NCBI GenBank assembly: GCA_964035545.1
Contig: CAXIUT010000191.1
Location: 1-23,224 of the forward strand
DNA from: Bugula neritina
Taxonomy: Eukaryota; Animalia; Bryozoa
Length of the DNA stretch: 23,224 bases
Direction: 5' to 3'
The notes beneath the pieces were generated by a model that was given only the letters and a program-made list of their open reading frames with translations, did no database searches and was not told the origin of the DNA. This document shows, in pieces, positions 424 to 23,224 of this stretch (positions are counted from its first letter, which is position 1; every line of letters begins with the position of its first letter). The translations under genes and the position numbers were made by a program.

Positions 424-471
424 CTCAGCTTGTGCGGGATTATCTGAGCTAGGATAGTCTGCTGTGTTCAT
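190..471 (-). CDS. Stand-alone WGR domain protein
   Basis: RFYLMTVQRDLFGGATLVREWGRIG...KFKRGY matches the WGR domain pattern. Confidence 0.9.
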   Translation of the reverse strand: MNTADYPSSDNPAQAEVFPSRIKLRRIDPIHKMRRFYLMTVQRDLFGGATLVREWGRIGSGGKLKTSYHADEGQAVDALAHLAQQKFKRGYRI

Positions 472-3700: not shown

Positions 3701-3710
3701 AAGGGTGCTA

Positions 3711-4041: not shown

Positions 4042-4064
4042 GTTGGTGAGCGGTATAGTAAAAA

Positions 4065-4135
4065 GGTGAGAGATAAGTTTGACTCTTCTCACCTATAATT
4101 ATAATGGTGAGAAGTTCTAGCAAGAAATTCTCACC
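4065..4135. promoter_or_regulatory. rep promoter/operator with inverted half-iterons
   Basis: GGTGAGA 4065, TCTCACC 4087-4093, GGTGAGAA 4106 and TTCTCACC 4128-4135 interleave with TTGACT (4079) and TATAAT (4094, 4100). Confidence 0.75.
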
Positions 4136-5495
4136 CATGGCAGTTACAAGCAATAAGTCGACAAAAAATGTCGTTCCAAAATCCTCTACCGAGATCGTAA
4201 GGAAGAACGTTTCTGCCGTGCATATCGGTGCGCGCCTATCTCTCATGCAGCGTAAGCTGGTGAACGCGATGCTGCTCAACGCCTATGATACTTTGGTCGT
4301 TGAGGACACCCATAGCGTAAACGTAAGTCTGCTGATGGAAATGATTGGTTTTGATAGCCGAAACCAGGAACACCTTAAATCAGCCATTAGAGGTCTTACA
4401 CAGAAAAGCGTTGAGTGGGACATAATGGAAGACGACGGGACACAGGTCTGGGAAGTCTCCACCCTGCTCTCGTATGCCAGTATTCGCAAAGGTGTTTGCA
4501 CGTATCGCTATGACAAGAGCCTTGCTGAAAAGCTAAGAAACCCAGATATTTACGCGAAAATTAGTCTGAGCGTTGTGCGAGAGATCCGCAGCGTTCACGC
4601 ACTTGTCTTGTACGAAAATTGCTATCGCTATGTGAATATAGGCCATACTCCAAAGTGGGACATTGATGTCTTCAGAAAGCTCATGGGGGTCGATACCGCT
4701 GTAAGTTATAAGCAATTCAAGGTGCTTAAACGCGATGTGATTACCCCTGCTATCAAAGAGATAAACAAGGTTTCGAACATTCAAATTGAGCTTGAAACGG
4801 TGATGAAAGGTCGGACGGTCGTTGCGGTGCAATTCATCATAAGGCCGAATAAACAGCTCGCCTTGCTCGGGCTCGAACTGGAAGATGATGTGACCTCAAG
4901 CAGAGCTTATAAAGCTCTCATCGAGTGTAAGATTGGGAAAAAGTGGGCGTATGATCTCGTTGAAGAACACGGCGAAGAGTATGTTCTTGAGAAAATTGAA
5001 CTTACCGATGCGCGGATGCGTGAAGGGAAGATCAAGTCTTCAAAAGCAGCATTCCTTCGTGCCGCCTTACAGGACGATTATCATAGTGATGTAGCGGAGA
5101 AGAGGCGACAGAGAGACGTGGCTGATGCAAATCGAAACGCTCGCCTTAAGCTTGAGGCAGAACTAGCGGCAGCGAAAAAGAACCTCAAAAAGCTGGAGAA
5201 GATGTATCGTGAAGCGTGCTTGGACCTCGTAACACAAGAGATTGAAAATCTCGACGATGAACAACGTGCATCAACAGAGGCAGCGTTCCGGTCTTCCCTA
5301 TCCAGCAAAATTTATACGGATGACTTTGTAAGATCGAGCTGGGCTGGGCGCTTGATCTTCACCGATGTGTATCAGTTCTGGGAAAAGCGCGGCGTAAGCT
5401 TTCCTGAACCTGATGAGATGATTGCGGATGGCGGTTCTCGAACAACCTCCCAAGAACGTTCGCGGATAAAGGAACTCGAGAGCCAGCTCATGTGA
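4104..5495 (+). CDS. repB: Rep_3 (RepB-type) replication initiator
   Basis: LSLMQRKLVNAMLL, ALVLYENCYRY and YKQFKVLKRDVITPAIKEIN are winged-helix Rep_3 motifs, and the gene is adjacent to iterons. The true start may be ATG 4137. Confidence 0.9.
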   Translation: MVRSSSKKFSPMAVTSNKSTKNVVPKSSTEIVRKNVSAVHIGARLSLMQRKLVNAMLLNAYDTLVVEDTHSVNVSLLMEMIGFDSRNQEHLKSAIRGLTQKSVEWDIMEDDGTQVWEVSTLLSYASIRKGVCTYRYDKSLAEKLRNPDIYAKISLSVVREIRSVHALVLYENCYRYVNIGHTPKWDIDVFRKLMGVDTAVSYKQFKVLKRDVITPAIKEINKVSNIQIELETVMKGRTVVAVQFIIRPNKQLALLGLELEDDVTSSRAYKALIECKIGKKWAYDLVEEHGEEYVLEKIELTDARMREGKIKSSKAAFLRAALQDDYHSDVAEKRRQRDVADANRNARLKLEAELAAAKKNLKKLEKMYREACLDLVTQEIENLDDEQRASTEAAFRSSLSSKIYTDDFVRSSWAGRLIFTDVYQFWEKRGVSFPEPDEMIADGGSRTTSQERSRIKELESQLM

Positions 5496-6759: not shown

Positions 6760-7311
6760 TTAGAAAAACCGTCTAACCCGCCTTATGTAGTCCTGATATT
6801 TGGAGCCGTACTGCGTTTTAAGCCAAGGCTCTTCAGCGAATGGTGCCGCTATCAGAATAGCTATTCCTGCAAGGCCGACGTTGGCCGCTGATTCCGATGC
6901 CGATAGAATAATCCAGCCTCCAACTATCGCGATATCCGCCACGTATTGCGGGTTGCGAGAATAGCGATACATACCCGTTGTTCGCAACGAACCTTTAGCA
7001 CCCCCTGTTTGCGGAACGCCGAAGTGTGCGACCTCTGACCAAACAACGATATTGCCTGCAACGATCAAGGGAATGCCCAAACCGAACCGCAACCAATTTG
7101 GCACCGATAGGCTACCCCACTCTAAAATTCCCAAGGCAATCAGAATACCAAACAGCGTGAAGGTAGGAACCCAAACCACGATTGGTGTTAACGCCGTGTA
7201 GCGCTTAGGCGGCCATAGGCGATGCGTGGGAACCACGATTGACCAGATCATTGCAACGAATGTTGCCGCCGCAACGCTCAGACCGAGACTAGCCAATATA
7301 CTCTGCATCAT
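6760..7311 (-). CDS. Isoprenylcysteine carboxyl/phospholipid methyltransferase (ICMT/PEMT) family membrane protein
   Basis: LRTTGMYRYSRNPQY and EEPWLKTQYGSKYQDY..RVRRF motifs, with several TM segments. Confidence 0.88.
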   Translation of the reverse strand: MMQSILASLGLSVAAATFVAMIWSIVVPTHRLWPPKRYTALTPIVVWVPTFTLFGILIALGILEWGSLSVPNWLRFGLGIPLIVAGNIVVWSEVAHFGVPQTGGAKGSLRTTGMYRYSRNPQYVADIAIVGGWIILSASESAANVGLAGIAILIAAPFAEEPWLKTQYGSKYQDYIRRVRRFF

Positions 7312-7907
7312 ACTTGAACGTGCTTGTGATTAAGCACCTCCCGCTTTTCCGTAAGGGCTTGACGGACGATTTGGAACGCCGAGGACAAAAACAAACCTGC
7401 CATGATTGTCGCAACGATGAGATCAGGCCAACCGCTCGCCGTTCCCCATACGCCAAGGGCGGCAAACATAACCGCCACGTTGCCAATGGCATCGTTGCGT
7501 GAACATAGCCAAACTGAACGCACGTTGGCATCGCCATCTTTGTAACGCACCAACAGAAGCACGCTAGCCAGATTGGTCAATAGCGCCAGAAAACCAACAA
7601 AGCCCATAATTTCTGCCGTTGGCACTCCAACGTAGAAGACCCGATACACGGTTGATCCCAAGACCCACAAACCCATCAAAAACAAACTTATGCCTTTGAA
7701 CAGTGCGGCGTTAGTCCGTGCGCGCAGTGAAGCTCCGATAACAGCAAGCGAAATTCCATAAGTGAGTGCGTCGCCTGCAAAGTCTAGTGCGTCTGCTTGC
7801 AACGCTTGTGATTTTGCCAAATGTCCTGCCGTCATCTCCACGAAAAACATAATCGCGTTAAGGGCTATGACGATCCAGAGCCGTCGTTTGTAATCGTTTG
7901 AAACACC
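7308..7907 (-). pseudogene. CDF-family cation (Co/Zn/Cd) transporter, 5'-truncated by IS30
   Basis: SQALQADALDF and SVWLCSRNDAIGN motifs. The frame continues upstream of Met 7850 as GVSNDYKRRLWIVIALNAI up to the IS end at 7908, with no native start codon. Confidence 0.8.
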
Positions 7908-9025
7908 TGTGAGCGATACGTGAACCGCGACTCCTGTTGGCTTCAGGATAGGGCGATCACCGCAGTTCCACCATCATCTTTTCACGGAAGACTTCGGCTG
8001 GTGTTTTCCATCCGAGGCATTTGCGGGGCGTGTTGTTGAGCCGATCACAGATCTCTTTCATGTCTTGATCGGTCATTGACCTGATATCTCGCTTTCGCGG
8101 AAGCCACCGTCTTGCTCGGCGATTTGTGTTCTCCACCGTACCTTTTTGCCAAGGCGAAGAGGGGTCGCAGAACCATGTTTGCGTCCCAATCTCCGCTTGA
8201 AGATGCGGCCAGTTCATAAATTCAGAGCCTCGATCAAAGGTGATCGATCTGCGTGCCTGGTGGGGGAGGTCTTTGATGGCTTTGATGATCTTACCCATCA
8301 CAGGCTTCGTTCGCTTGTTGGGGTTCTTCAGGATCACAGTGAAGCGGCTCACGCGTTCAACCAACGATGTAACATTGCTCTGGCCAAGCTTCTGTTCAAA
8401 CAGCATTAAATCTCCCTCCCAGTGCCCAAACTCTCGTCGGTGGGCAACATCATCTGGTCGGAATAAGATACTGACGTCACGATGGAATTTGGGAGGATGC
8501 TTTTTACGCGCACGGCGTGGCCTTCGCGCGACACGATGCGTTGGCAAGTACCACCAAAGTTCATCACGCAGGCCTTCTTTGGAATAGATGTGACGATAAA
8601 TCGTTTCTTGGCAAACTCGCACTGGGGCGTTTTCATGGATCATCCGATTACCAATCTGCTCTGGCGTCCAGCCATTTTTCAGCCGCTCAATCACACGCTT
8701 GCACAGTTCTGGATATTTGATCAGCTTACGATCTCGCGCACGACGATCTGCACTCATTCGATGCGCCGCATCACCGTAATAACCATCGCATTTCGGCATG
8801 CTCTCATCGCTGAAGAAATTCCTCTTCAGTTCTCTGAAAATCGTTGATCTGCAGCGCTTCAAAACACGCGCCATCTCATCAACAGGGACTTTGGCATGTC
8901 TCCAGCGTTCAATCTTACGTCGTTCTATGATACTCAGTTGCGTATAAACGGCTCCCATACCGATTCCTCTCGTCAGATAACATGTTGTTTTCTAACAAGA
9001 GTCGCAGTTGGGGGTAGCGCGCACC
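7908..9025 (-). mobile_element. IS30-family insertion sequence (~1118 bp)
   Basis: Imperfect terminal IRs TGTGAGCGATACGTGAACCGCGACTCCTGTTGG (7908-7940) and GGTGCGCGCTACCCCCAACTGCGACTCTTGTTAG (reverse complement of 8992-9025) enclose the transposase. No target duplication is seen. Confidence 0.9.
7957..8958 (-). CDS. IS30-family DDE transposase
   Basis: N-terminal HTH, WTPEQI, HWEGDL, TFDRGSEF and PWQKGTVENTN. Confidence 0.96.
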   Translation of the reverse strand: MGAVYTQLSIIERRKIERWRHAKVPVDEMARVLKRCRSTIFRELKRNFFSDESMPKCDGYYGDAAHRMSADRRARDRKLIKYPELCKRVIERLKNGWTPEQIGNRMIHENAPVRVCQETIYRHIYSKEGLRDELWWYLPTHRVARRPRRARKKHPPKFHRDVSILFRPDDVAHRREFGHWEGDLMLFEQKLGQSNVTSLVERVSRFTVILKNPNKRTKPVMGKIIKAIKDLPHQARRSITFDRGSEFMNWPHLQAEIGTQTWFCDPSSPWQKGTVENTNRRARRWLPRKRDIRSMTDQDMKEICDRLNNTPRKCLGWKTPAEVFREKMMVELR

Positions 9026-9081: not shown

Positions 9082-9621
9082 CTAACCCCACATCCCCACA
9101 AACTGCTTCTCGTTATACTTGGCATATATAGCTGTGTTGGTGATTGACACATGACCAAGGTAAATCTGCACAGCCCGAATATCAAAACCGTTGTTGATCA
9201 TATAAAAACCACAGCCATGACGCAGCATGTGCGGGTTTACGCGGGGCAGGGCAGCGTCTTTGCTGCACTGCTCAAGGATCTTGTTGACAGAGCTCCGCGC
9301 AAAAGGCGTTCCGCGCTCTGAGACAAAGAGCCAGGGAAGTTCAGAAACCCGTTCACGCAAATACCGCCTGAGAAGCCTTAGCTCATCTCCGGCCATCGGG
9401 TGCATTCCATCGATGCCGTTTTTGTTACGCTTCACGAAGAGGGTAGACTGCTCCAGGTTCAACTGTTCAAGTTGAATACTACACAGCTCAGACACGCGTA
9501 GCCCGTGACGGTAGAGCATCAACACGACCAGCTCGTTACGAGCTGGGTTTCTGGTCTTTCGTGCTGCCTTGCGTAGGGCCTCGACCTCACTGGCAGTGAC
9601 CCAGTTTTTGACGGTGTTCAT
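9082..9621 (-). CDS. FimB/FimE-like tyrosine recombinase
   Basis: 179 aa, catalytic domain only: YRHGLRVSEL, HPM, PHMLRHGCGF, YLGHVSITNTAIY. Confidence 0.92.
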   Translation of the reverse strand: MNTVKNWVTASEVEALRKAARKTRNPARNELVVLMLYRHGLRVSELCSIQLEQLNLEQSTLFVKRNKNGIDGMHPMAGDELRLLRRYLRERVSELPWLFVSERGTPFARSSVNKILEQCSKDAALPRVNPHMLRHGCGFYMINNGFDIRAVQIYLGHVSITNTAIYAKYNEKQFVGMWG

Positions 9622-9753
9622 ATAACTTTCTACAAAATATAAGTTGGTGTTCTGTCTGAACCGTCCTGAAAGCCTAACAAAATAGGGCAGGGGGCAACAG
9701 CACTTTCAACATTATATACATTTTGTGGAAGGTTACAAAATACATCGAATCTT

Positions 9754-9781
9754 TTGACAAGCCTCACTCTGTCCATACAAT
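9754..9781 (+). promoter_or_regulatory. sigma70 promoter of brnTA
   Basis: TTGACA (9754-9759), 16-nt spacer, TACAAT (9776-9781). Confidence 0.75.
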
Positions 9782-9788
9782 GCATCAT

Positions 9789-10067
9789 ATGATACAAGTA
9801 CGATGGAATATCGAGAAGGCGAAGCGCCTTCATGCGCACACAGATAGAAAGGGTGTTGGCTTTGAGGACTGCGTGATTGCGATAGAGGATGGAAGGGTAC
9901 TTGCTGATGAACCCCATCCTCAAAGGGAAAACCAACGGTTGCTGATCTTAGAAATCGATAGCTACGCGCATGTTGTCCCGTATGTTGAAGAAGAAGACGG
10001 AACCCTTTTTCTTAAAACGGTTTTTCCAAGCCGTAAGCACCACGCAAAATATTTGGCTAACGAGTAA
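9789..10067 (+). CDS. BrnT-like type II toxin
   Basis: WNIEKAKRL...RKGVGFEDCV and YAHVVPYV...LFLKTVFPSRK match the BrnT/DUF497-like pattern. The start is placed at ATG 9789, after the promoter. Confidence 0.82.
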   Translation: MIQVRWNIEKAKRLHAHTDRKGVGFEDCVIAIEDGRVLADEPHPQRENQRLLILEIDSYAHVVPYVEEEDGTLFLKTVFPSRKHHAKYLANE

Positions 10068-10420: not shown

Positions 10421-11365
10421 TTAGTCAGCTAGGAAGATGGTGCTCACAAGCCCATTGTCACCGCGAGCTATGCCTGTGCCCGCGACTTCATCAGGAATTT
10501 TGTTTCCTGCATCGTATCCATGGAAATTACCACCAGACTGCTGAACGGTATTCGGTCCAGTGAGATCTACGGGCGCACCTCCGTTCGTGGTTGCTATGTT
10601 GCCGCCCGTGAATGAACTGCCAGAAATACCCATTCCAGTAATTTGGATCATGTCTACAGGTGATGCGACAACACTACCTGTAGCTTGATCCCGCGCTGTG
10701 AAGTTTGAAACGGTTACATCTACATTTCCATTAAGAAAATCTGCCGTGACGCTGCTTTGACCATTCTCCAAGTCTAAGCCAAGAGTATTGGTGGCAATAA
10801 CACCAGACGCTTCTCCAGTATATGTTCCACCACCTTTATTCGGCATATCAGCCGACGACGTTGCAATTCCATAGACGCCGGAAACATCGTAGTTTGTGCC
10901 ACCAGCAGAGTATGTTTGTGTGTACTTCTGCACGTACTCATATGATCCGGTTGTGCTAAGTGTCAGAACCGATGAACCATCAGTGAGACGTCTATTCGCG
11001 TCTGGGCCGTCAGAATCCACGAGTGAATATGTTCCGTCATTAAACGATGTATTTCCTGAGTTGTGAACAAGCGATCCGGTTGGGCGTACCACAAGAATTT
11101 GGCCTGAAGAATTATTTGTCTGAAATGCTGATCCTGCCAGCGCGCTTGTAGAAGCGTTAGTGCTTGACAGTGTTTGGTAGTTTGGCGTCACGGTTCCTGC
11201 GGTTCCTGCGGTTCCTGCGGTTCCTGCGGTTCCTGCGGTTCCTGCGGTTCCTGTGGGTGGTGGAGTTGTCATCTCTGGCAAATTACAGCAAGGAGTTGGT
11301 CCGGTGGCAATCAATGTGCCAATGCAAGCAACGGCTACGGTTACTTTGTACAGAAGCAGTTTCAT
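10421..11365 (-). CDS. Transferrin-binding-protein-like (TbpB C-barrel) surface protein
   Basis: DMPNKGGGTYTGEA, SSVTADFLNGNVDVT, ISGSSFTG and GNFHG...PDEVAG, after a hydrophobic N-terminus and a P/T/G linker. Confidence 0.75.
   Translation of the reverse strand: MKLLLYKVTVAVACIGTLIATGPTPCCNLPEMTTPPPTGTAGTAGTAGTAGTAGTAGTVTPNYQTLSSTNASTSALAGSAFQTNNSSGQILVVRPTGSLVHNSGNTSFNDGTYSLVDSDGPDANRRLTDGSSVLTLSTTGSYEYVQKYTQTYSAGGTNYDVSGVYGIATSSADMPNKGGGTYTGEASGVIATNTLGLDLENGQSSVTADFLNGNVDVTVSNFTARDQATGSVVASPVDMIQITGMGISGSSFTGGNIATTNGGAPVDLTGPNTVQQSGGNFHGYDAGNKIPDEVAGTGIARGDNGLVSTIFLAD
11191..11253. repeat. Perfect 9-bp tandem repeat (CGGTTCCTG)x7, encoding (GTA)n linker
   Basis: Read directly from the sequence; in frame within the TbpB-like gene. 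Confidence 0.95.
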
Positions 11366-11760
11366 ACAGATATCCTAAAATTAACAAAACTCATTGCGGC
11401 TCCTATGAGCACGCCGATCAAACCCAAGAAAAGATCCATCCAATCAAACGTGCCAAAATTCGAATAGTTACTGATAGCGTCTGGGGTAATGCTATCCAAC
11501 CGCCCCTTCATTTCAGGATGTTGTGATACTTCGAACAAAGTAACGATTAGTCCTACTAAAGCTCCTGAAAAGGTTACATCTTTTACGCCTCTATATGGAT
11601 AAGCTAGCAGGTATGTAAAAAAGAGAGCGTGCGAGAATGCTGGTAAGGACTGCAACAATAACCCTTCACTGACACCCAACCACGCGCGGATTGGATATAT
11701 TGCGCTTCCCATCAAAAACATACAAACAGCAAGTGTTGCCAGAGCTATCTTTACGTTCAT
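11362..11760 (-). CDS. Small membrane protein, VanZ/DUF2809-like
   Basis: Four hydrophobic segments with SLPAFSH, FEVSQ and GTFDWMDL motifs. ATGA overlaps with both neighbours. Confidence 0.65.
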   Translation of the reverse strand: MNVKIALATLAVCMFLMGSAIYPIRAWLGVSEGLLLQSLPAFSHALFFTYLLAYPYRGVKDVTFSGALVGLIVTLFEVSQHPEMKGRLDSITPDAISNYSNFGTFDWMDLFLGLIGVLIGAAMSFVNFRISV

Positions 11761-14700
11761 AAGAACATGAAGACATCTGCGTCGATCTGACTGGTAGTTA
11801 AGCCATAGAAGAGGATACTTGTGCCTTCTGCGTTGAAGACTGCGCCATCCGCACTGTCGCTCATGAAAGATGTAACATTTGAAGCGTTCACGGTTGTAAA
11901 CTCCAAAAGTCTGAGAGCATCGTCTCCATTTCCAAAATCACTACCCGAAACGACGACGCTATATCCACTTGTGTCGTTGAAAACTACATTCTCTACATTG
12001 AACGTGCCAATGGTATTATCGCCCTCGTTTGGCTTGAAGATAAACGTATCCGCTCCTCGTCCCCCCATAAGGAAATCATTACCTGCCCCCGCAATGAGTA
12101 TGTCCGAGCCTGCGAAAATACCGTTACTTGCTTCACCGCGAATTACATCATTGCCATTTCCACCATCGAGCGTATCAGCTTGAAAACCACCCAATAGAAG
12201 ATCTGAGTCTTCGCCGCCTGACGTGTGATTGATGCCTAGTTTCGACACGATCTTATCGTGTCCTTGCTGTCCTGATACTGTTTGGCTTTGAAGCGAGCTG
12301 ATGATCAAATCATCTGCGGCACTACCATAGACCGTATCAGAATTTTGCTGACCAAGAACACTGAGCACCTCAGAGATGAAGATGTTGTTCGCCTCATCCA
12401 CTTCATCCTCGTCATTATCGCTATCCAGCTGAAGCACGACGCGCCCCGATCCTTCTTGCAGATCAGATGGTGCGAAGAAATTGAGAGTAATGTCTGACTT
12501 TTCATTCCAAAGGAGCGGATTCACTTCCACTTTTCCGAGAAGGACAGAGTCACTGTCGAGTGTTCCGTCGTCAGTCAAGTAGGCGTTGACGGCAATTACT
12601 GATGAGGTTGACCCAATTTCAATATCAAATGGTGAGAAGCTGATGGGTGCATCGCCTCTGTTAAGGGCGCTAAACCCAAAGCTGAAATCTTCCCCTGCGA
12701 CAATCGAAGTCGGGATAGAGGCCTCTCCATCAAACCGAAGATCAGGCTGTGGGCTGTCTTTTACAATGACGTAGTGAGAAACGAGTGAAAGCTGTTCGCT
12801 ATCGTCAGATGAGCGAAGCTCCGTGAGCACGTAGTGCCCGCCAAGAGTACTATCGAGATCGATCTCTACGCGTGATTGGTAGTTCTGGTTTTGGCCTTGA
12901 GTCATTGAAGCAAGAACTGCTGATGTAAGAAGTTTATCTCCTTCATCCAGCTCATCATTTTCAGAAAGGTATGTACGGATAATTTCGCCGCCAGGCGTTA
13001 TAGTTGGGCTGAAGTTCTCATAGCTCACACCAAAATACAAAGTTCCCCCAAGATACGGGAAGTCTTCGCCGCCCCAGCCTGTTGCCCTGATGTCCACGAC
13101 TGGAGCTGGCTGCACAGTTACTGCGTGAGCGGTCTCAACTAGAAGCGCATTATCATCCGCAACAACGCGATAGATGAGGTTTTGGAGCCCTTCTTCATTG
13201 TCTTCGGGCGTATACTGGTAATCTACGCGATGGCTTTCACCGGCTTCTATGACGGGCAAAATGAGTGATATGACCTCACGATCACCCCCATCTTTTGAAC
13301 CATCAGCAGACAGAAAAATTTCTACGCGCTCTGTGCCGCTACTGGCCGCGCCTCCTGAGTTCGTGAATACAACAAACGCGTTTTGCTGCTCTCCTACAGT
13401 GAGATCAACAGTTTCACTGCGACCTTGGTATTCCAAGAAAGCTTCAGTGGGAGGCGCAACATCATCGTTGGTGATCGTAGTGTGAGCTATTGCCTTCAGA
13501 GGATCAATCTTGGCGGTTCCATCTGGCGAGCTTAAGCCGATTGAGAGAACCTCGTCTGGCGCAACTATGTCATCGCCGTCTACTAAAAGTGTTATGGTCC
13601 GGCTGGCTGTGTCGCCATCAGCGAAAGTTACCGATCCTGAACGATTTCCAGCTCCGTCGGTGATAGAGCTACGCCCTGAAAGCACCGACCACTCAACGGT
13701 CTGTGCACCTTGGCTACCTCCTGCACGTGAAATCTCAAACGGAATTTCTGTTTGCTCTCCCGCACTTCCTTCAAAAACTTCTTGGGATTGTTCGGTAATG
13801 CGAATGAGGCCAGCGCCACCTGTTCCAACAAAAACTGAAGCATAAGCAATGTTGTTGCCTTCATCGGCCTCTTCCACAGTTTCAGCATGATCTGCTTTGA
13901 TGCCTATGAAATATTCACCTAGCCCAAATACATACCCATACCAACCTTCGGTTGCTTCAACGGCTCCAGCTTCCAAGCTTGGAAAGTAAGGTTCGATGAA
14001 TACCCTTTCACTCTCATCGAACGTGGTATCGCTCGAGATATACATCGCAACAGAATAAGCACCTGAAGCTGATTGGCCGCGATTGAAGACGTCAAAGTCG
14101 AAATAGAATTCTTCTCCAAGGTCTGGATCTACAGTGGTGATAATGAGGTTTTCTACTGATAGATCTGCGGGTCCAAGATCTTTTGGTACCAGTGTCATCT
14201 GCGCAGAGGCGATATTGTTGGCTTCGTTTGTCTCATCCCAGCGATGAGCAGAATCCACCTCGCCAAAGACGGTGTAGGTGTGACCAGGCTCCAAATCACC
14301 AGTTGTAATGTAAACCGTCGAAGAGTTATTGGCAGATCGAGATCTGTCTGAAACTTCAACGTCATCAGAGTTCCCATAAACATCATCATAGGAAACGGTG
14401 ACCGTTACGCGATGAAGATTGTCTGGCGAGTCTGTTAGGTTTTTGGTTTTGTAGAGTAGAGCGAGTGTCCCACCCTTTTCGGTATCCGTTGCGCCATAAA
14501 GATTGAATGCAGAGAACACGTAGTCTTGCAGTGGAGCAGCGGGGGGAGGGTCTTGAATAGTAAGTTTGCGTCCTGAAGAAATATTGTCCCCTAACTGGGC
14601 CTCGGCTCCAGCGCTGGCTGAATTAGCGCGCGCGAAGAAATAATATTCACTTCCTTGAGCAAATGAACTTGTAATCGAAGCGGGAACAGTGACCGAAACC

Positions 14701-16175
14701 TCTCGTGTGTCACCTCCTGCAATATTGATATCTTGCGACCCAACTACGACTGCATTACTCAATGAAAACGTTGGTGAGCTAGAGTAGTAAAAAGTGGTCT
14801 GCGTCATTCCTGTCGCTTCATCACCATCGTTCTTAATCCGTGCAGTCAGCGTAATAGGGGCGCTTTGTTCGATCAGGCTATTATCTAGCCAGAGATCTAC
14901 AATGCGTTGGTTCGGTGGCGTACTGTCGGGTTCCCCAGGATTTCCGCCTGGATCGGCGGCTTCGGGTTCAATTTGTATGAAAAAGGAAAAGCGATTGTTG
15001 TCTTCATTAGAGCCTTCATCTGTACGATCCTGCACGTCTGCCGCTAGGACCACCTCATAGGTTCCAGGTGTAATATCCTCTGGGATCATGAAGCTTGGCG
15101 AGGTTAGTTGTTGCGCTTCACCTCCACGGAGAATTTTTGTCAAACCAGATTTAAAGCCTGAGCCAATTTCGGATGCAGTACCAAATGCCCAGAACGATAT
15201 GGTCGAGCTAGTCGCACCTTGGTTGACTACTTCGTAGTCGAAAGAAACTTCGTCTCCAGGCTTGAAAACCCGCGAGAATGTTGCGTTCTCTGAAACAGCC
15301 TCGTTTTCAAAAAATACGTTATCGATGATAAGATCGGCGGGGCCCGTATCGGGTGGATCTACAACGACAGGAGGATCGGTTTCATCCTGAGGAAACGAAA
15401 TCTGCAAATCGAACGTTTCACGCTGCGTGATATTCTCGCCTGATACAACGATGTAGTAACCTTGGTCCGGGGTATAGAACCAGTCTACATGCTCATCCTG
15501 TGTTCCAGGGTTTCGAGACTGAATACCTTGGCCCGCAATAGGGCGTCCCTGGTAGTCTAACACTTCTAGATCGAGCTCTCCCGTAAGTCCCAAGAGATCG
15601 ACATTGATTGGGCCGCTACCAGCCGTTTCGATATAAAAAATCCGGTGATACACACCGTCTTCAAGCTCTACGGCGTAGGTCTTATACTGTGAAACAAAGC
15701 TAAGTTCGTCATAGCCCTCATCATTATCAATCGTTCCCGTTGTAGAAAGAGTCGAACCTCCTTGCGCGGAAACAGCACCTTGGATGTCAGAAATCGTTAG
15801 GCTTACCTTATCTCCGTCTTTGTTTTCTGGCCGTCTATCACCTTTGATCGCAACCTTAATCTGCTCCTTGTGATACCCATCCGACAAGCTCTCGAACGGT
15901 ATTGTTACCGTAAGATTATTCAGCTCATGAAAATCATCATCGGTATCATTAGATGTGTTCACAACAAAGGTCACATCTTCGTACGCAACACCTCGAACTT
16001 CGACATCAAAGGTTAGGTAATTTTCACCGTCATAGTCGCCTTCGCTCACGGAAGAACCGTTCAGATAAAGCTTCGGCTTCGGTGCAAGACTGGTGCCACC
16101 GGAGAACTCAACTAAATCGTGATTATCTTCATAAGTTGCTGAAGCATATACTAACTTTACCTCTCGCCCATTCAA
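11757..16175 (-). CDS. Large RTX/T1SS-type protein: Calx-beta x2, PPC-like, ~7 CARDB-like repeats, Ca-binding nonapeptides
   Basis: Repeated xDLxV..VxNxG..ExxExNN units; GSVTFADGDTASRTITLLVDGDD; GGNGND, AGAGND and GGRGAD repeats; C-terminus DADVFMFL; no N-terminal signal peptide. Probably the C-terminal part of a longer gene. Confidence 0.88.
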   Translation of the reverse strand: MNGREVKLVYASATYEDNHDLVEFSGGTSLAPKPKLYLNGSSVSEGDYDGENYLTFDVEVRGVAYEDVTFVVNTSNDTDDDFHELNNLTVTIPFESLSDGYHKEQIKVAIKGDRRPENKDGDKVSLTISDIQGAVSAQGGSTLSTTGTIDNDEGYDELSFVSQYKTYAVELEDGVYHRIFYIETAGSGPINVDLLGLTGELDLEVLDYQGRPIAGQGIQSRNPGTQDEHVDWFYTPDQGYYIVVSGENITQRETFDLQISFPQDETDPPVVVDPPDTGPADLIIDNVFFENEAVSENATFSRVFKPGDEVSFDYEVVNQGATSSTISFWAFGTASEIGSGFKSGLTKILRGGEAQQLTSPSFMIPEDITPGTYEVVLAADVQDRTDEGSNEDNNRFSFFIQIEPEAADPGGNPGEPDSTPPNQRIVDLWLDNSLIEQSAPITLTARIKNDGDEATGMTQTTFYYSSSPTFSLSNAVVVGSQDINIAGGDTREVSVTVPASITSSFAQGSEYYFFARANSASAGAEAQLGDNISSGRKLTIQDPPPAAPLQDYVFSAFNLYGATDTEKGGTLALLYKTKNLTDSPDNLHRVTVTVSYDDVYGNSDDVEVSDRSRSANNSSTVYITTGDLEPGHTYTVFGEVDSAHRWDETNEANNIASAQMTLVPKDLGPADLSVENLIITTVDPDLGEEFYFDFDVFNRGQSASGAYSVAMYISSDTTFDESERVFIEPYFPSLEAGAVEATEGWYGYVFGLGEYFIGIKADHAETVEEADEGNNIAYASVFVGTGGAGLIRITEQSQEVFEGSAGEQTEIPFEISRAGGSQGAQTVEWSVLSGRSSITDGAGNRSGSVTFADGDTASRTITLLVDGDDIVAPDEVLSIGLSSPDGTAKIDPLKAIAHTTITNDDVAPPTEAFLEYQGRSETVDLTVGEQQNAFVVFTNSGGAASSGTERVEIFLSADGSKDGGDREVISLILPVIEAGESHRVDYQYTPEDNEEGLQNLIYRVVADDNALLVETAHAVTVQPAPVVDIRATGWGGEDFPYLGGTLYFGVSYENFSPTITPGGEIIRTYLSENDELDEGDKLLTSAVLASMTQGQNQNYQSRVEIDLDSTLGGHYVLTELRSSDDSEQLSLVSHYVIVKDSPQPDLRFDGEASIPTSIVAGEDFSFGFSALNRGDAPISFSPFDIEIGSTSSVIAVNAYLTDDGTLDSDSVLLGKVEVNPLLWNEKSDITLNFFAPSDLQEGSGRVVLQLDSDNDEDEVDEANNIFISEVLSVLGQQNSDTVYGSAADDLIISSLQSQTVSGQQGHDKIVSKLGINHTSGGEDSDLLLGGFQADTLDGGNGNDVIRGEASNGIFAGSDILIAGAGNDFLMGGRGADTFIFKPNEGDNTIGTFNVENVVFNDTSGYSVVVSGSDFGNGDDALRLLEFTTVNASNVTSFMSDSADGAVFNAEGTSILFYGLTTSQIDADVFMFL

Positions 16176-16993
16176 CTTATCGATCCTTCCTCGAGTTTTG
16201 TACCGACCTGGAAGTGAAGATGTGCGCCACCTGTTACCCCTGATAGGCCAATCGTTCCGATTGCTTGCCCTTTTTGAACAAAGTCACCAATTTTAACTCC
16301 ACTATTATCGACTGAATTTTGTCCCAAATGTAGATACGAAGCGTAAAATTTCCGACCATCATCTGACACATGCAGGACTGTTATCCAGTTACCGAACTTA
16401 CCTGGGCCTTTGTCTGAATTAACACTGTTGTCAGTGCTTTGGGCGTCATCAAAATAGCCAACAACTAACCCATCGGCGGCGGCACGAACCGTCGTCCCAA
16501 CGGGTTGCGCAAAATCCCAAGCAGCGTCATCGTGTATCGTTGGTGTATCACCAATGTGACCGCTTGGCCCCTGAGATGTAATCTGTGGGTTCGCGACTTC
16601 GGAGCCGAAAGGGTAGTCAACCACAATCGGTGTCGTAGGATCATTCGCAACGTTGCCTAAAACAAAAATATCATCAAAAAAAACAACTCTTTGAATATTT
16701 TCTATTTGAGCAACTGTGGATCGATCTTCATGCTCTAAAGTTGGATATTCAAGGAACTCTCCAATACTGTACTTTTCCGAATTATCCTTAACAATTAGAG
16801 TGTTCGTGCCACCTACGCCATCAAATATTTTAAAGCTAGAACCCAAATAGAAAACATTGTCTGAGTTATCGCCATCAGAGTTCAACGTGTCTTTTATAAT
16901 TTCAAATTCACCATTCGAAAATGAGATTTCTTCCCATTCACCGCTTAGCTCAGGTCTAAAATAGCTGTTTACGTTAGAAATTCCATCAAACAA
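16172..16993 (-). CDS. M23-family metallopeptidase domain ORF (probable middle of fused toxin)
   Basis: HDDAAWDF, GTTVRAAADG, FGNWITVLH, YLHL and GAHLHF motifs, preceded by a degenerate RTX-like module (DGVGGTNTL...IENIQRVVFFD). Confidence 0.88.
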   Translation of the reverse strand: MFDGISNVNSYFRPELSGEWEEISFSNGEFEIIKDTLNSDGDNSDNVFYLGSSFKIFDGVGGTNTLIVKDNSEKYSIGEFLEYPTLEHEDRSTVAQIENIQRVVFFDDIFVLGNVANDPTTPIVVDYPFGSEVANPQITSQGPSGHIGDTPTIHDDAAWDFAQPVGTTVRAAADGLVVGYFDDAQSTDNSVNSDKGPGKFGNWITVLHVSDDGRKFYASYLHLGQNSVDNSGVKIGDFVQKGQAIGTIGLSGVTGGAHLHFQVGTKLEEGSIS

Positions 16994-17016
16994 ATTTTTG
17001 AAAATGCCCTCTGTTT

Positions 17017-18030
17017 TTACCCTACTTTTCCTTCAAAGTTTTCCGTCAACCAGCCATCAACGAAATTCAAACTAGCTGATATCGCGCCAATTGCATCACT
17101 GTCGGGAAAAGCAATATCTGCAAGATCGACAGAAGATTTTAGAAATTCATAATTTTCATATAATTCGTATATAGAATAAGCTATTGCGAACGGCCCACCA
17201 ATAGCACGAGCAAGTAAACCCGCCCCTACTTCAAGAGCGGACACCCCCAAAAAAGAGGTCAGCGCATTCGCGTCAATATCCAAATTAGAATTTTCGACAA
17301 ACTGGCGCAACTCATTAGCAGTGAGTTCTTCTTTCTTTACAATATCTGCAGCTAATTTACCAAGAGACGCGACACTTAAACCAATCGCAGCAGCACCAAC
17401 TGTTCCAGAAGATTTATCTAAATCAAATCCGGAATGTATCTTTGCCTTTATGTCAGGATCAATATTGTGAAATGTTTGCCCAGACGTGATTTTAGAAAAA
17501 TTATCACTATCCAGATATTTGGAAAAAGGTTTTCCAATCTTTTTGAAATTTGGATCAGTAGTAACCAAGTACAAATTTGGGAGTTCTTTTACTTCATCAA
17601 ATATCTTAAAGTGATCAAAATCAATAGAAGGCGCTAAAGCCTGCTTTACACCTCTCAACTCTCCAATCAAATTAGATTTTGCTTGTGCTGGAGTAAGCCC
17701 CTCGGCGTCCATCTTTACTTGAACACCCAAGATATATGATCGCAAGAAAATAGTGTATTCAGGTGAGTGACTACCATGCTTTGCTAGCGAGTATTGACCC
17801 TTCTCAATACCTAGCAACGCGTCTTCTATAGGTAACGGAACTCCATTATATTCAGAATCAAAATCAAAATCGATCTTATCGAGAAAGCTTATGATATCTT
17901 CATCATAGTATAAGCTCGTAGGGTCTTTTAAGCTTTGAGGGATAACATGGTGGGCTTGCCACTTACCCAGCTTGAGAAGCTCGCTATCAGAATATGAATT
18001 CTCAAGTGATTTTCGCAAAGCATCGGCCAC
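17017..18030 (-). CDS. AHH (HNH/EndoVII-fold) nuclease toxin domain + Gly/Ala-rich hydrophobic helices
   Basis: WQAHHVIP...FDFDSEYNGVPLP...KHGSHSPEY matches the AHH pattern. The GTG start follows GGAG, 1 nt after the upstream stop. Confidence 0.82.
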   Translation of the reverse strand: MADALRKSLENSYSDSELLKLGKWQAHHVIPQSLKDPTSLYYDEDIISFLDKIDFDFDSEYNGVPLPIEDALLGIEKGQYSLAKHGSHSPEYTIFLRSYILGVQVKMDAEGLTPAQAKSNLIGELRGVKQALAPSIDFDHFKIFDEVKELPNLYLVTTDPNFKKIGKPFSKYLDSDNFSKITSGQTFHNIDPDIKAKIHSGFDLDKSSGTVGAAAIGLSVASLGKLAADIVKKEELTANELRQFVENSNLDIDANALTSFLGVSALEVGAGLLARAIGGPFAIAYSIYELYENYEFLKSSVDLADIAFPDSDAIGAISASLNFVDGWLTENFEGKVG

Positions 18031-18031
18031 A

Positions 18032-18653
18032 TTAAATCTCCACGCATTTATTTACTAACAGACATTGAATTGCCGTTTCATTTAGTATTTCGAATAAATT
18101 GTCGGAAATATACAGCATGTCCCTACCCAGTACCGTTGAGTCCATCCAAATATCAAAACTTGATATCTTTGATTTGTGAACGGATAGCGGTATATTCAAA
18201 TTGTTATGATCAATTTTTCCATAAACTTTCCCATCGACACTTTGGCATTCCACAAAACGATCTCTGCACTCATTAGAAATCGCCTTCACAAACTTTTCAA
18301 TTCTTATCAAAAAATATTCTGAATTCTGACGCACTTTTACTATCAAGTACACTTGAATAAATGGGCACCAAGTCAACTTTGTTTTTTGCATTTTTTAATA
18401 GAAAATTCGCCACAATATCGTCACAAAACCAATAGTGACCACGTCCAAAAAAATTTGGCAACCACTCCTGTGTCGAGAACTTCACTTTTACTTCGTAGCG
18501 ATCTAATTTGGGAAATTCACCAAGAAATATGGAGCGGCGTGATTCTGTGCTAAAAAATTCCTTCGGGCAATCAACTATCTCGACCCACGCCTTTTCACCC
18601 AGCGGATATAGATCAAAGGATCTTGGAATTGTATGGGAAATTTGCTTTGTCAT
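18032..18653 (-). CDS. Imm11/DUF1629-like immunity protein (split by one frameshift at ~18310-18390)
   Basis: Overlapping ORFs 18297-18653 and 18032-18391 join to ~207 aa with LPNFF..WFCDD..FL..VDLVPI / YFLIRI..DIW..LYISDNLFEIL. The gene is adjacent to an AHH domain. Confidence 0.65.
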
Positions 18654-18739: not shown

Positions 18740-19484
18740 TTAAGAAAACCCGTATGCATTTATCACTTCAATAAATTCTACCTGCGATCCACCAACATCA
18801 GGATGGTTCTTTTTAACCTTGCGTCTATACGCTGCCTTTAACTCATCAGGGCTATAGCTCCTTGACGGATCAAGTCCCAAAATCATCAAGCAACGCGTTC
18901 TTTCATCTTCAGCAGGCGATGGATTCTTTGCAGCACTTCCTCGACCTTTTTGAGGATTGGTAGCGGCTCTGTTCTTTCGTGTCACCCGCTTTGTCCCTTT
19001 TATCTTGAGTCGCCTTAGCCTTCCGCCGAAACCCTCTAGCCTCATCCTGCCAACCAGCACGGGCACTCTGCCTCTGTTCTTGCGGCTTATACGCTTGGCG
19101 CCGCGTTTCCTCTCTCAGCTCATGTTCCCGCTCTTCCAGTTCTTGCTCACGCCTACGGATGTCCTCAAACGCGCTGCGATACCGAAACGCATAGATCAAA
19201 TCTCCGAGGTTCCCCGCCCATGCCAGCGCTGAGAAAAAAAGTCCCCACATGCGCCACGCCCAACACGAAAATGCCGCCCAGGATGGGGCCCAGCATCGCG
19301 GACGGGTTCGTAGAGAAACAGACCAAAATAAAGAATGAGCAGGATTTTCCACCAGGACAGGCGCTTGGTGAGCTTGCCTAGATATTTGCCAGCGAGGAAT
19401 AGAACTATCAGCAGAAACAGAAACGCCGGATTGAATAGAGCTGTCAGGGCAAGGCGCCTGAAGATCCTCAAAGTAGTCTATCAT
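18740..19484 (-). CDS. Membrane-anchored J-domain (DnaJ-like) protein, frameshifted in assembly
   Basis: The pieces give N-terminal TM helices (FLFLLIVLFLAG, WWKILLILYFGLFLY), a coiled coil, and C-terminal ILGL..ELKAAYRRKVKKNHPDVGG with HPD. Confidence 0.78.
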
Positions 19485-20942
19485 TGCAGCGGCACCCTTT
19501 GATTTTCGCTGCGCCTTGCTGTTTACTGAGATGCGCTGCGCCGTAGCGTTTCGGAACGCGGGACAACTTGCGGTGCTGGAAATAGGGTGTGGTTTCAATA
19601 ATTGCAGGGTTTTTGTTTGCACTGACCAAAAGCGCCTGCGTGTCTCCCATTCTTCGGATCGCATCAGCGTTGAGCAGATTGTACTCGTGCCGCTGCTGCG
19701 TGATGTCTTCGATCTTATCCCCTTCGAACCTCGATGACCTTTCCGGCTATGGCCTCAAAGAAACGCGCCGTCTCTTGGTCTGAGCCGCTATAGGCAAGAT
19801 AGGTGGTAAAGCCGCCTTGGATGCTCTGCGCGTAGTCTCGACCATAACGGGCAGAAAGCTGGCTCAGGGATTGCAGCACAATCGATAGGCTCACTTTGTA
19901 ACCCCTGATCGTGTTCGCCACGGATACGAAGGACGGTATCGTGGAGTGACCAAATTCATCATAGAGAATGTAGAGCGGAAGTGTAGATTTCGTGGGCATC
20001 TTTCGCATTGAAGCGTTGAACACGCTGCGGAAAAACACGCTCGTCCAAAATCCATAATATTCAGCCAAATGCGGCGGCGTTATAAAAAACACAGCCGTCT
20101 TTTCATGGCGGATGGATTCCAGGCTGAAGCTGCTACTGGCGGTCAGCTCGATCAAGTTCTTGTTGGTGAAGGCTTTCAGGGCCGTCAGCGCTGTAAGAGC
20201 GAAGCTCTGCACCGCGTTTGGGTTTCCCGTCACGGCTCCCTTCCATTCTTCCCACAGGCTTGAATCCTCTGGGTTGCTCGGATTGTAGGCCCACTTGATT
20301 ACAAAGTCGTCCAGGGGTGAGCCGTCCTGCCCAAAATTCTGAAGGCAGTGATACAAATTCCCCAGGGTGTAATAACTGGGGTCACTGTATCCTGCGCGCT
20401 GCAAAAGTTTGAGGCAAGATAGAGATCATGCGCGTTGCGCCGTGTTCCAAAACTCATCCTTGGAACTACCTGACCCCTGCTTTGATAAGAATTTCCGCAA
20501 TCTGCTCGATTTCAATATCGTCCTTGGCTTCAAGCAGAGGATTGAAGTTTGAGCTGCTGGCAAGATCTTCAGGATTTATCGCAATGACCTTGAAGCCACG
20601 TGATTGCAGATAGCCTGAAGTTTCCGCGAACACCTCGCCTTGGGGTCATTCACCACAATGGAGCAGTTTCGTTTCGCGCGATCCAAAACCGACGGTATAA
20701 TATACCGACTGGTTTTCCCCGCTCCCACGCGGGCAATGACCGCTACGTTTTGAAAACTCTCACGCTCAGGACAGCCGGCCTTCATTACCATCCATGAGCA
20801 GGCCTGTGTTGCGTGAAGAAAGCAGGGTGCTGGTTTCTGAACCTGTGAGCATACGCGCGCCGCCTTGTCGCTTCAGGAACTTCCCAAAGAGTAGGGCATA
20901 TCCCGCGTTCTTACTCAACTCACTCAAAAATCTTCCCAGCAC
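19481..20942 (-). CDS. VirD4/TraG-like type IV coupling protein, frameshifted in assembly
   Basis: Walker A ARVGAGKT, IVVNDPK, Walker B ILYDEFG and SIVLQSLSQLSARYG are spread over several frames. Boundaries are approximate. Confidence 0.85.
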
Positions 20943-21102: not shown

Positions 21103-22264
21103 TCACCTGCTGCGTCCACCTTTGCTCTGTCCATCCTTGCCTGTAATCGTGCGGGCTACTTCGTCCTTGGTTTCTCTCAGCTCATCCATACTGCGTTTCC
21201 AAGCATTCTGGATAGGTGAGAGGCCTTCGCCTTGCTCTTCAGTTCGACCATCTTCGGATTTTACTCCAGAAGGATCAGGAACGACGCGTTCCCCCTCATC
21301 CACGATCTGTACCTTCTGCGGTTCTCCTGGCGCACTTCCCATATCTCGCTCCTGTGTTTGCTCTTCTTGCGTACCATCTGGCGCTTTGCGCTGCGTATCA
21401 TGCTCGGTCTCACGACTTCGCTTCCCAGCGTCTTTTTCTTTTTCACCCGCAGCCTTTTTCTCAGCTCAACGCTTCTCTCATCCTGACGTTCAACATCTAC
21501 CCCAGAGAGCCGGATTTCGATCTGATCGGCCACCTGCAAATCCAGCGTCTTCAGGCGATGCTTTTTGCCTGTCTCCAGATCCACCACGCCGACGGTCTTC
21601 CCTCGAACATAGAGGTCGAGGCCCTCATGGCCGAGCGCTGCGAGAAGGCTGTCACGGTCTTCGCTGGCCTCATAAGCGCTGCCGATACGCTGCAAGATGT
21701 CTTCACGCTTCGGACGCTGCCCTGTGCGGCGTTCTAGCTCGGCTTCCCTCTTGCCGCGTCCACGCTCTGAGCGTTTTCCAATCGCGAGTTTCTGTTCCAG
21801 CTCAGGGTAGTCTGAAGCACGTGCGCTTCGAGCTTCACTTGGATGTCTCGAAACTGGTGTTTGGTGAGACGCTGGCGTTTCACCTCGCCTGAGCGATTGG
21901 CAGAGATCATCAGGTGCATATGGTAGGAATGATCCTTGTCCTGGTGCAGGCCACCATAGACCAGATTGTCCGGGCAACGCGCCGCGATGTATTCACGCGC
22001 GATCTCATGCAGGCGCTCTTTCTGCTCTTGCGCGCTGAGGCCCTTGCGCGGGTTATCGAGATGATTTCGTGAAACAGGTAGGTGCCGTTTTTGCGTTTCT
22101 GCAATAAACTCCGCATTGCGCTCATACTCATCTCTGATGCTGCGGTGGTCACGTCCTAGCAGATTGTGCCGCAGCGTGAATTCTTCCTGCCCCTCTTCGC
22201 GGTCAATATACTCCAAGAGCTGACCAAAGCTTGGCACCTTGCGGCTCATGGATTTGATTATCAT
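21103..22264 (-). CDS. MOBP-type relaxase, frameshifted in assembly
   Basis: Motif I (LLEYI), motif II (YLFHEIIS) and HUH motif III (LHQDKDHSYHMHLMISAN), followed by a charged C-terminal tail. Confidence 0.88.
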
Positions 22265-22739: not shown

Positions 22740-22845
22740 GCAGGGGTGAAAAACCCCCTGCCAAGATGCGTATTCGCGAACAGATTTTAGCCAGCAACGC
22801 GAGGCTCAAAAATCTTGTTCGTTACGAATATGCAATCTTGCAACG
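22740..22845. promoter_or_regulatory. oriT: short hairpin plus ~37-bp inverted repeat ending at putative nic (22840/22841)
   Basis: GCAGGGG-N8-CCCCTGC at 22740-22761. Arm 22762-22795 is complementary to 5-41 (degenerate copy at 22804-22840). Lies upstream of mobC. Confidence 0.7.
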
Positions 22846-23224
22846 TACGAAACGCTGCCAGTATGCGCAAAATTATCGAGGTGTCAAAACGAGCTGCTTC
22901 ACTCGTTCTTCACATAAAGCCGATGTGTGGTCTGATGGCTTAAATTTGTGTGAAGATTTTGCGGGTGAAAAAGAAAAAACAGGTGTCGGGTTAGATACGG
23001 TAGCCGCGTTTGAATTTTTGCTGCGCGAGGTGTGCCAGAGCATCTACGGCTTGGCCTTCATCTGCGTGGTAGCTGGTCTTGAGTTTGCCACCAGAGCCGA
23101 TACGTCCCCATTCGCGAACGAGGGTCGCGCCTCCAAAGAGATCGCGCTGCACGGTCATCAAATAGAAGCGCGCATCTTGTGTATAGGGTCGATCCGGCGC
23201 AGCTTAATGCGGCTTGGAAAAAAC
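22800..23224. repeat. Terminal direct repeat, right copy (includes 3' part of WGR gene, 22991-23224)
   Basis: Duplicate of 1-~423. Confidence 0.95.

Follow-up and report, generated by a model that had tools for sequence, protein, structure and literature searches.

The window analyzed here is a stretch of 23,224 nucleotides from Bugula neritina (Bryozoa; assembly GCA_964035545.1, contig CAXIUT010000191.1, positions 1 to 23,224 of the forward strand). We focused on a group of minus-strand genes at 10421–18653, for which an earlier note, made from the sequence alone, had proposed a plasmid-borne, type I-secreted polymorphic toxin system with the toxin domain in front and its immunity gene upstream. 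These genes form a co-directional, tightly packed block (Table 1). Neighboring open reading frames (ORFs) are separated by 1 nt (18031) or 23 nt (16994–17016), or overlap by 4 bp (16172–16175, 11757–11760 and 11362–11365). The tightly coupled unit described in the earlier note is therefore real. AHH, M23, PPC/CARDB and RTX domains follow each other in the order stated there, but they are distributed over three separate ORFs in different frames and not combined in one protein: AHH and a helical domain in the first, M23 in the second, and Calx-beta, PPC, CARDB and RTX in the third. Together, the three ORFs contain no cysteine in 2082 aa and have pI values of 4.0–4.7, a Cys-free acidic makeup that is typical of type I secretion system (T1SS) substrates. 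The G+C content is ~0.34–0.41 across the Imm pieces, the AHH ORF and the N-terminal part of the M23 ORF (16604–18653), and ~0.48 from the M23 domain onward (10421–16603). Beyond 18800 it climbs sharply to >0.54, and the 87 nt upstream of the operon have 18% G+C. A promoter and terminator scan gave results no better than those for shuffled sequences, with no terminator-like sites at the toxin junctions.

Table 1. Coordinates of the features described in the text (window positions)
Feature	Position	Strand	Description
Imm11-like gene, 5' piece	18297..18653	minus	118-aa ORF, ATG start
7-bp tandem direct repeat	18316..18329	minus	tcagaat x2; point of the Imm11-like frame change
Imm11-like gene, 3' piece	18032..18391	minus	119-aa ORF in the other frame, overlapping the 5' piece
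AHH + helical ORF	17017..18030	minus	337 aa, GTG start, pI 4.7, no Cys
AHH (HNH/EndoVII-fold) domain	17698..17967	minus	Residues 22-111
Helical domain	17041..17433	minus	~130 aa, all-helical, residues about 200-330; NSNL ... GGP ... YE[LI]YENY ... AFP
AHH/M23 junction	17020..17032	minus	Only stretch open in both frames; A4 run 17026-17029; downstream ORF in -1 frame
M23 ORF	16172..16993	minus	273 aa, TTG start; N-terminal 130 aa without assignment, M23 domain at residues 158-264
M23/RTX-carrier junction	16175..16205	minus	After HLHFQV, both frames open; A4 run 16196-16199; TTGA start/stop overlap; downstream ORF in -1 frame
RTX carrier ORF	11757..16175	minus	1472 aa, TTG start, 0 Cys, pI 4.05
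132-aa protein	11362..11760	minus	Four hydrophobic segments; start overlaps RTX ORF stop (ATGA)
314-aa protein	10421..11365	minus	Signal-peptide-like N-terminus, (GTA)n repeat, weak TbpB barrel-like C-terminus
Rep3/RepB-type initiator	4104-5495		~50% identity to Octadecabacter and Sulfitobacter plasmid initiators, its closest
IS30 element	7908-9021		80% identical to Phaeobacter copies
TraG/VirD4-like gene	19516-20909		Full length vs Desulfotalea plasmid homologue
Relaxase-like gene	21534-22264		One frame change near 21815; no nonsense codon

The assignment of the first ORF to AHH was borne out, with nuclease activity as its predicted function. The Pfam AHH profile (PF14412) scored 29.6 bits against a gathering cutoff of 22.3 (E 7e-7), and the motif residues described for AHH, i.e., [AG]HH, N, H, H and Y (PMC3482391), are present as QAHHVIP, NGVPLP and KHGSHSPEY in conserved columns of the family alignment A1. 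In the same alignment, the N-terminus of the 337-aa ORF lines up with the starts of its relatives. The AlphaFold model reaches a predicted local distance difference test (pLDDT) score of 80–93 over the AHH core blocks (residues 31–60 and 91–130). The AHH ORF had no match by sequence in the PDB, none among plasmids (tblastn) and no homologue in a word-based search. Behind the AHH domain lies the helical domain, modeled with seven predicted helices (pLDDT 68.7). The Gly/Ala-rich hydrophobic helices previously noted at this place were recovered as two moderately hydrophobic segments, residues 208–232 and 254–287, with Kyte-Doolittle means over 19 residues of ~1.6. The ORF ends where release or carrier modules begin in the relatives. 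When the AlphaFold model of the complete AHH ORF (pLDDT 59.7) and that of the helical domain were compared with the PDB by Foldseek, nothing better than E 0.6 was returned. A likeness of the helical domain to translocation domains of the colicin or diphtheria toxin type was considered and is without support in these Foldseek searches.

Upstream of the AHH ORF, two overlapping ORFs occupy the position held by Imm11 in the relatives, and the stop of the 3' piece lies 1 nt ahead of the AHH ORF start. Neither piece matched Pfam Imm11 (PF07791), even at E up to 10, and BLASTP of both pieces against the Imm11 proteins of the relatives gave no match. When profiles were aligned with hhalign, residues 25–109 of the 3' piece matched columns 111–197 of a six-protein Imm11 alignment (E 2.5e-5, probability 75%), while residues 66–98 of the 5' piece matched columns 66–98 of the same six proteins weakly (E 0.045). 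The two alignments are collinear, and the point at which they meet is a 7-bp tandem repeat, which, unlike the other frame breaks on the plasmid, is not a homopolymer; the homologous part of the 3' piece begins at residue 25 with 'EYFLIRI' (about 18319). There is moderate evidence that both ORFs represent one divergent Imm11-like gene with an interrupted frame. Position and collinear profile similarity thus suggest that the proposed gene is present upstream, but it is split in two and has no Pfam Imm11 match.

The canonical zinc-binding and catalytic motifs of M23 peptidases are HxxxD, H and HxH. In the second ORF, HLH and YLHL are present, while the first motif reads H-x5-D, as in protein P0014, and not HxxxD. 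The M23 domain itself is supported, as claimed earlier, by Pfam Peptidase_M23 (E 4e-15, 56 bits against a cutoff of 28.7) and by M23 matches in NCBIfam and, by sequence, in the PDB. TTG is the only possible start of this ORF, which contains no Met throughout and no Cys and has a pI of 4.3. Its homologue search yielded one distant M23 protein and nothing beyond the M23 domain, and its N-terminus showed no similarity to the linkers that follow the helical domain in the relatives. Truncation of M23 at the junction with the RTX ORF was considered; P0014 likewise ends 8 residues after HLHFEI.

The third and longest ORF is composed of a Calx-beta-like domain, PPC, six or more CARDB domains, Calx-beta, a further CARDB domain, RTX repeats and an acidic C-terminus. 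The described Calx-beta/PPC/CARDB stalk was confirmed with Pfam, which detected PPC and at least six CARDB domains and matched Calx-beta weakly. The RTX repeats (GGxGxD) span residues about 1275–1400 of 1472, with a HemolysinCabind match at E 2e-13 and further matches to NCBIfam RTX models. The remaining 72 aa are acidic and end in DADVFMFL, and the alignment of the last 200 aa with Rhodobacterales 'calcium-binding proteins' extends right up to where these proteins end (tblastn, to residue 1471). RTX repeats with a T1SS-type C-terminus, as stated in the earlier note, are thus present, and the tail is consistent with an uncleaved C-terminal secretion signal. It also resembles the C-terminus of the RTX ORF in the related locus L015. 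No close homologue of the RTX ORF was found in 5.8 billion clusters, where matches were limited to the level of RTX and Calx domains.

Relatives were identified by an HMMER scan with the AHH+helical module, covering 1.84 billion representatives, and are referred to below as proteins (P) or loci (L). The module is shared by 11 clusters, five of which are long proteins (1018–2956 aa) with AHH at the extreme N-terminus, followed by the helical region and then by RTX repeats. AHH, helical domain and RTX are found in one chain in P0003, P0004, P0005, P0010 and the L012 protein. The genome scan identified two loci, one encoding a 2840-aa protein of the isolate Marinibactrum halimedae (L012) and the other a fragment in a Hahella metagenome-assembled genome, while the scan of metagenome contigs for the family yielded 0 loci. 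Based on the hidden Markov model (HMM), each family protein contains one copy of the helical domain, which is located after the head, mostly at residues 200–420, and lies outside this range only in the N-terminally short P0009 and P0013. All heads are AHH, except that P0009 is apparently headless and begins with the helical domain and that P0012 carries another head, the only non-AHH head found so far. The helical domain is followed at once by RTX in P0005, P0009 and the L012 protein, by a Hint domain starting with Cys in P0007, P0010, P0011 and P0013, and by an SPM self-processing module in P0012 (precomputed Pfam). The module is joined to the RTX region in six fused loci (L001, L004, L006, L012, L014 and L015); in L002, an AHH+helical ORF (the 336-aa homologue) is followed by an overlapping RTX ORF.

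An Imm11 or Imm11/Imm43 gene is located directly upstream in L001, L002/L003, L004 and L015, with gaps of 0–3 nt or an overlap. In L014, the upstream gene (224 aa) is faintly similar to the Imm11-type upstream genes of the relatives, and the upstream genes of L006 and L012 come from another family and stand beside a DUF4261 gene. L004 encodes, in addition, a second, convergent RTX gene with SPM (precomputed Pfam) and without the helical domain, which has its own weak Imm11 gene upstream. Export genes are close by in two loci: a C39-ABC transporter and an HlyD-type gene immediately upstream in L006, and an adjacent HlyD-type gene in L012. By the reasoning of the earlier note, an export signal that has to remain at the C-terminus places the toxin domain in front and the immunity gene upstream. 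This inference fits the build of the family, with its N-terminal AHH and upstream Imm11/Imm43, but in the window itself the toxin frame is split and the immunity gene interrupted. The note had also suggested a search for homologues that share the stalk and RTX end and differ at the N-terminus; the M23/CARDB stalk was found in no relative, but P0012 does place a non-AHH head on the helical domain. The M23 and RTX ORFs of the window had no BLAST similarity to the SPM region of P0012, and the likeness of the window to P0012 is confined to the helical and RTX parts.

Two of the related loci showed further features. Four tandem paralogues of 220–265 aa, 55–65% identical and without a Pfam family, lie between DUF4261 and the AHH-RTX gene in L012 (4073–7110) and have a relative in the upstream gene of L006 (226 aa); we regard this array as a candidate new immunity family. 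In L009 (8001–20287), the P0012 gene is followed, with a 0-nt gap, by a second giant RTX/Laminin_G_3 gene of >3000 aa and preceded by two small genes without annotation, encoding 179 aa (weak GNAT similarity) and 147 aa.

Downstream of the RTX ORF, the block ends with two small genes, neither of which had a plasmid relative by tblastn. The 132-aa protein had been called VanZ-like, a name that we do not retain, with no Pfam or NCBIfam match for the ORF at 11362–11760. The proposed TbpB-like identity of the 314-aa protein is weak, with TbpB_B_D remaining below threshold (17.5 bits against a cutoff of 26, E 0.006). The 314-aa gene contains a perfect tandem repeat of 9 bp x7 (11191–11253), in frame and encoding (Gly-Thr-Ala)n, which could vary in length from strain to strain. 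The repeat-bearing protein would be secreted or lipoprotein-like and, like the 132-aa membrane protein, is coupled to the operon.

The location of the block on a plasmid, as claimed earlier, was confirmed. Nucleotides 24–422 recur at 22823–23222, so that the window represents an entire circular replicon of ~22.8 kb whose overlapping ends were left untrimmed, and it carries a Rep3/RepB-type initiator preceded directly by seven copies of an 18-nt repeat (GTGAGAGAATTTGTGAAG-like; 3709–4054), which are probably iterons of the replication origin. The two copies of the ~400-nt overlap (window 1–430 vs 22790–23224) are distinguished by four single-base indels, of which three or more fall in T or A runs, and the first ~30 nt are scrambled; these mismatches point to an unpolished long-read assembly. 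The plasmid also encodes a primase-like gene and an H-NS-like gene. The IS30 element is flanked by a cation-efflux gene that lacks the first profile positions and by a tyrosine recombinase split into ORFs of 101 aa and 179 aa in different frames (flanks 7308–7850 and 9082–9935). The TraG-like gene has at least four frame changes, near 20768, 20625 (C4), 20465 (G4) and 19719 (G4), and, like the relaxase-like gene, no nonsense codon. A J-domain gene follows TraG at 18740–19066, in the order seen on a small Desulfotalea psychrophila plasmid. An exact-sequence look-up of eight window proteins gave 0 matches in the searched collection. A bacterium of the Roseobacter group is the most likely host.

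The interpretation of the locus depends on the nature of its frame breaks. Both toxin junctions share the same -1 offset, and each contains an A4 run within a short stretch open in both frames. Programmed -1 frameshifting was rejected, since both junctions lack an X XXY YYZ heptamer and the offset in the split relatives L002 and L015 is +1. In L015 (3890–3990), a 34-bp perfect tandem duplication shifts the frame between an AHH-Hint ORF and the RTX ORF; the break in the Imm11-like gene of the window is a lesion of this kind, being likewise a short tandem duplication. We judge the breaks in toxin and immunity genes to be secondary because most relatives are fused, with the split in L015 attributable to the duplication, TTG is the only possible start of both the M23 and the RTX ORF, and the -1 offset, the A4 runs and the Cys-free acidic composition are shared, and because the end overlap contains indels and the TraG-like and relaxase-like genes switch frames without nonsense codons. 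Error or decay is accordingly a somewhat better account of them than a designed state. Real decay of a once-fused gene is possible, if far from certain, and homopolymer errors of a long-read assembly that mask an intact gene are rather doubtful.

Overall, we favor with moderate confidence the view that the locus is a copy of a rare RTX/T1SS family built as a mirror image of the polymorphic toxins and that its breaks are secondary. The working form, as seen in the relatives, would be a single chain, composed of an N-terminal AHH DNase, the ~130-aa helical domain, an RTX block and a C-terminal secretion signal, in which the helical domain may be linked to RTX directly, through a self-cleaving Hint domain or, in the non-AHH P0012, through an Asp-Pro self-processing module. 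The immunity gene (Imm11/Imm43) would be located immediately upstream and translationally coupled. T1SS machineries export unfolded chains by means of a C-terminal signal. In the producer, the immunity protein would neutralize the DNase until the host T1SS exports the unfolded chain, C-terminus first; extracellular calcium would then fold the RTX part, and the N-terminal AHH+helical unit would be released, where Hint or SPM is present, or else presented. The helical domain would aid crossing of the target membrane, and AHH would cut the target DNA. It is plausible that, in the unique middle of this plasmid system, M23 adds wall cleavage or a second, periplasmic toxin, while the Calx-beta/PPC/CARDB stalk adds surface binding or reach.

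Several observations weigh against this interpretation. In the sequence as given, the toxin head and the RTX signal are separate polypeptides in three frames. A Shine-Dalgarno-like motif lies 7–11 nt upstream of each toxin ORF start, each toxin break coincides with a domain boundary, and the stand-alone AHH+helical relative P0008 (L002/L003, two assemblies) stops at the same place. The frames of the 4.4-kb RTX ORF, rep, IS30 and the primase gene are unbroken, which indicates that indel errors are infrequent in the central part of the contig; moreover, a 7-bp repeat, as found in the immunity gene, is atypical as a read error. No relative has anything that corresponds to the M23 and CARDB parts. 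No structural analogue of the helical domain was found in the PDB, and its role in entry is pure inference. As stated earlier, the plasmid carries no T1SS genes: across the whole ~22.8 kb, no ORF is large enough for an ABC transporter, membrane fusion protein or TolC. Export, cleavage, toxicity and immunity of the window system are predicted only.

Part of this evidence would be explained if the block were a genuine, functional multi-cistronic operon, whose AHH+helical, M23 and RTX stalk proteins are made separately by coupled translation and act together, for example with the stalk binding targets and two Cys-free acidic effectors being exported alone or handed over after secretion. The stops and frame changes are present in the sequence, the Shine-Dalgarno-like motifs and the breaks at domain boundaries are what such an operon would have, and L002/L003 provide the precedent of a stand-alone 336-aa homologue with an overlapping RTX ORF; the unbroken RTX ORF likewise indicates that read errors are not dense there. 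Nevertheless, we consider such an operon unlikely, given that separate AHH and M23 proteins would be without RTX repeats or a recognizable T1SS signal, that two consecutive TTG-only genes are unusual, that an interrupted immunity gene would be dangerous if the DNase were active, and that most relatives are fused. The genes could also be unlinked neighbors, i.e., an ordinary roseobacter T1SS adhesin or surface protein, a stand-alone M23 hydrolase and an orphan, silent AHH/Imm cassette left by recombination. The G+C step (~0.34–0.41 vs ~0.48) hints at such a mosaic origin, RTX 'calcium-binding proteins' are common on Rhodobacterales plasmids, and both the broken immunity gene and an M23-stalk portion without a relative in any family locus would fit. 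We find this quite improbable: chance adjacency is unlikely when the module is joined to RTX in six fused loci and is then followed by an RTX ORF in L002, and the Cys-free acidic composition is common to all three ORFs, which are tightly spaced without terminator-like sites at their junctions.

The identity of the target offers a further alternative, that the system acts on eukaryotes (algae, protists) in a CyaA-like manner and the upstream gene merely shields the DNA of the producer before export. The layout of enzyme, hydrophobic helices and RTX is that of CyaA, roseobacters live with algae, the nearest matches to the replication protein of the plasmid come from Octadecabacter and Sulfitobacter plasmids, and any DNase made in the cytoplasm needs an immunity gene. 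The pairing of AHH with Imm11/Imm43 is, however, catalogued as interbacterial (PMC3482391), immunity paralogue arrays as in L012 are typical of bacterial conflict systems, and the M23 domain acts on peptidoglycan; a eukaryotic target thus appears very improbable. We return to the interbacterial, mirror-image toxin in comparing the locus with known systems.

Polymorphic toxins (CDI/CdiA, Rhs, MafB, LXG; PMC3482391) share with the family the pairing of AHH with Imm11/Imm43, possibly a variable head on a conserved neighboring domain (P0012, the single non-AHH case, vs the AHH members), Hint autoprocessing beside the toxin, as in the relatives, and tandem immunity paralogues, as in L012. They differ in layout, since a C-terminal toxin with downstream immunity is their defining arrangement, while both the window and all of its relatives have an N-terminal toxin with immunity encoded upstream. 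They also differ in export, which would here be by T1SS; Zhang et al. 2012 reported AHH with type II, V, VI and VII secretion systems (T2SS, T5SS, T6SS, T7SS) and TcdB/TcaC trafficking, together with Imm11/Imm43, and did not list T1SS (PMC3482391). The closest published concept concerns FrpC/FrpD of Neisseria meningitidis and ApxIVA ('clip-and-link'), in which the N-terminal fragment of a large T1SS RTX protein is freed by SPM, a calcium-dependent Asp-Pro self-cleaving domain (PMC7078468). There, the product of an upstream gene in the same operon binds the N-terminus, as the immunity protein would in our family, and SPM occurs in the family and its surroundings both in P0012, with the helical domain, and in the neighboring RTX gene of L004, without it (precomputed Pfam). 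In contrast, no enzymatic domain is known from the FrpC N-terminus, and FrpD, a lipoprotein, is not related to Imm11. Bayer-Santos et al. 2019 observed that an effector of a type IV secretion system (T4SS) resembles the N-termini of many RTX proteins and hypothesized that FrpC is a T1SS antibacterial effector, with the upstream-encoded FrpD as its immunity protein (PMC6759196). The T4SS effectors of Xanthomonadales (X-Tfe/X-Tfi) follow a similar logic, in that a C-terminal signal forces toxin domains to the N-terminus and immunity is encoded upstream in a small operon; one X-Tfe of S. maltophilia even has an AHH domain (PMC6759196). Their signal and system are XVIPCD/VirD4, however, and not RTX/T1SS, and they are without RTX repeats or the helical domain of the family.

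CyaA of Bordetella and the MARTX toxins contain N-terminal or internal enzymatic cargo, a hydrophobic or translocation region, RTX and a C-terminal T1SS signal. The CyaA enzyme is pushed across the host membrane by the hydrophobic domain, and MARTX toxins free their cargo by autoprocessing. Their domain order matches the AHH-helical-RTX layout, but they target animal cells and have no dedicated immunity gene, and comparison of the helical domain with the PDB revealed no sequence or fold similarity to anything. The M23 bacteriolysins lysostaphin and zoocin A, both among the PDB sequence matches, likewise combine an M23 domain with a targeting region in a secreted antibacterial protein; they are, in contrast, Sec-secreted Gram-positive enzymes with cell-wall-binding domains, while the M23 domain of the window lies upstream of a CARDB/RTX stalk and has the H-x5-D first motif.

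A full-text search for AHH, RTX and T1SS returned only PMC6759196, most subscription journals being outside its coverage, and the literature searched yielded no account of the AHH-helical-RTX family or the helical domain. The earlier note did not recognize the architecture as a characterized system. This stands in so far as no AHH-RTX paper was found, but the FrpC/FrpD hypothesis, the X-T4SS effectors and CyaA share its logic; the concept has a published hypothesis behind it (PMC6759196), and the architecture is not wholly unprecedented. Tentatively, RTX/T1SS proteins may form an unnamed class of 'reverse' polymorphic toxins with exchangeable N-terminal heads, a helical entry domain, Hint or SPM release and upstream immunity; in the plasmid version, these parts would be joined by a CARDB stalk and an M23 module that cuts the wall.

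The finding is more interesting at the level of the family than in the window copy, which, with its interrupted frames, is a poor experimental start. The locus of the cultured isolate Marinibactrum halimedae NBRC 110095 (L012) is intact and lies beside a T1SS gene. T1SS is rarely counted among the routes of interbacterial enzyme toxins, and AHH/Imm11 pairs fused to RTX carriers provide a clean, testable case for nuclease delivery by this system. The family could also demonstrate that the usual gene order is turned round when the export signal is C-terminal. It draws attention to a conserved helical domain that may serve as an entry module, and it ties Hint and SPM self-cleavage to the release of cargo. 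Furthermore, it has a bearing on what FrpC-like RTX proteins do: if the 'reverse' class is true, it would provide a function for proteins of the FrpC/FrpD type.

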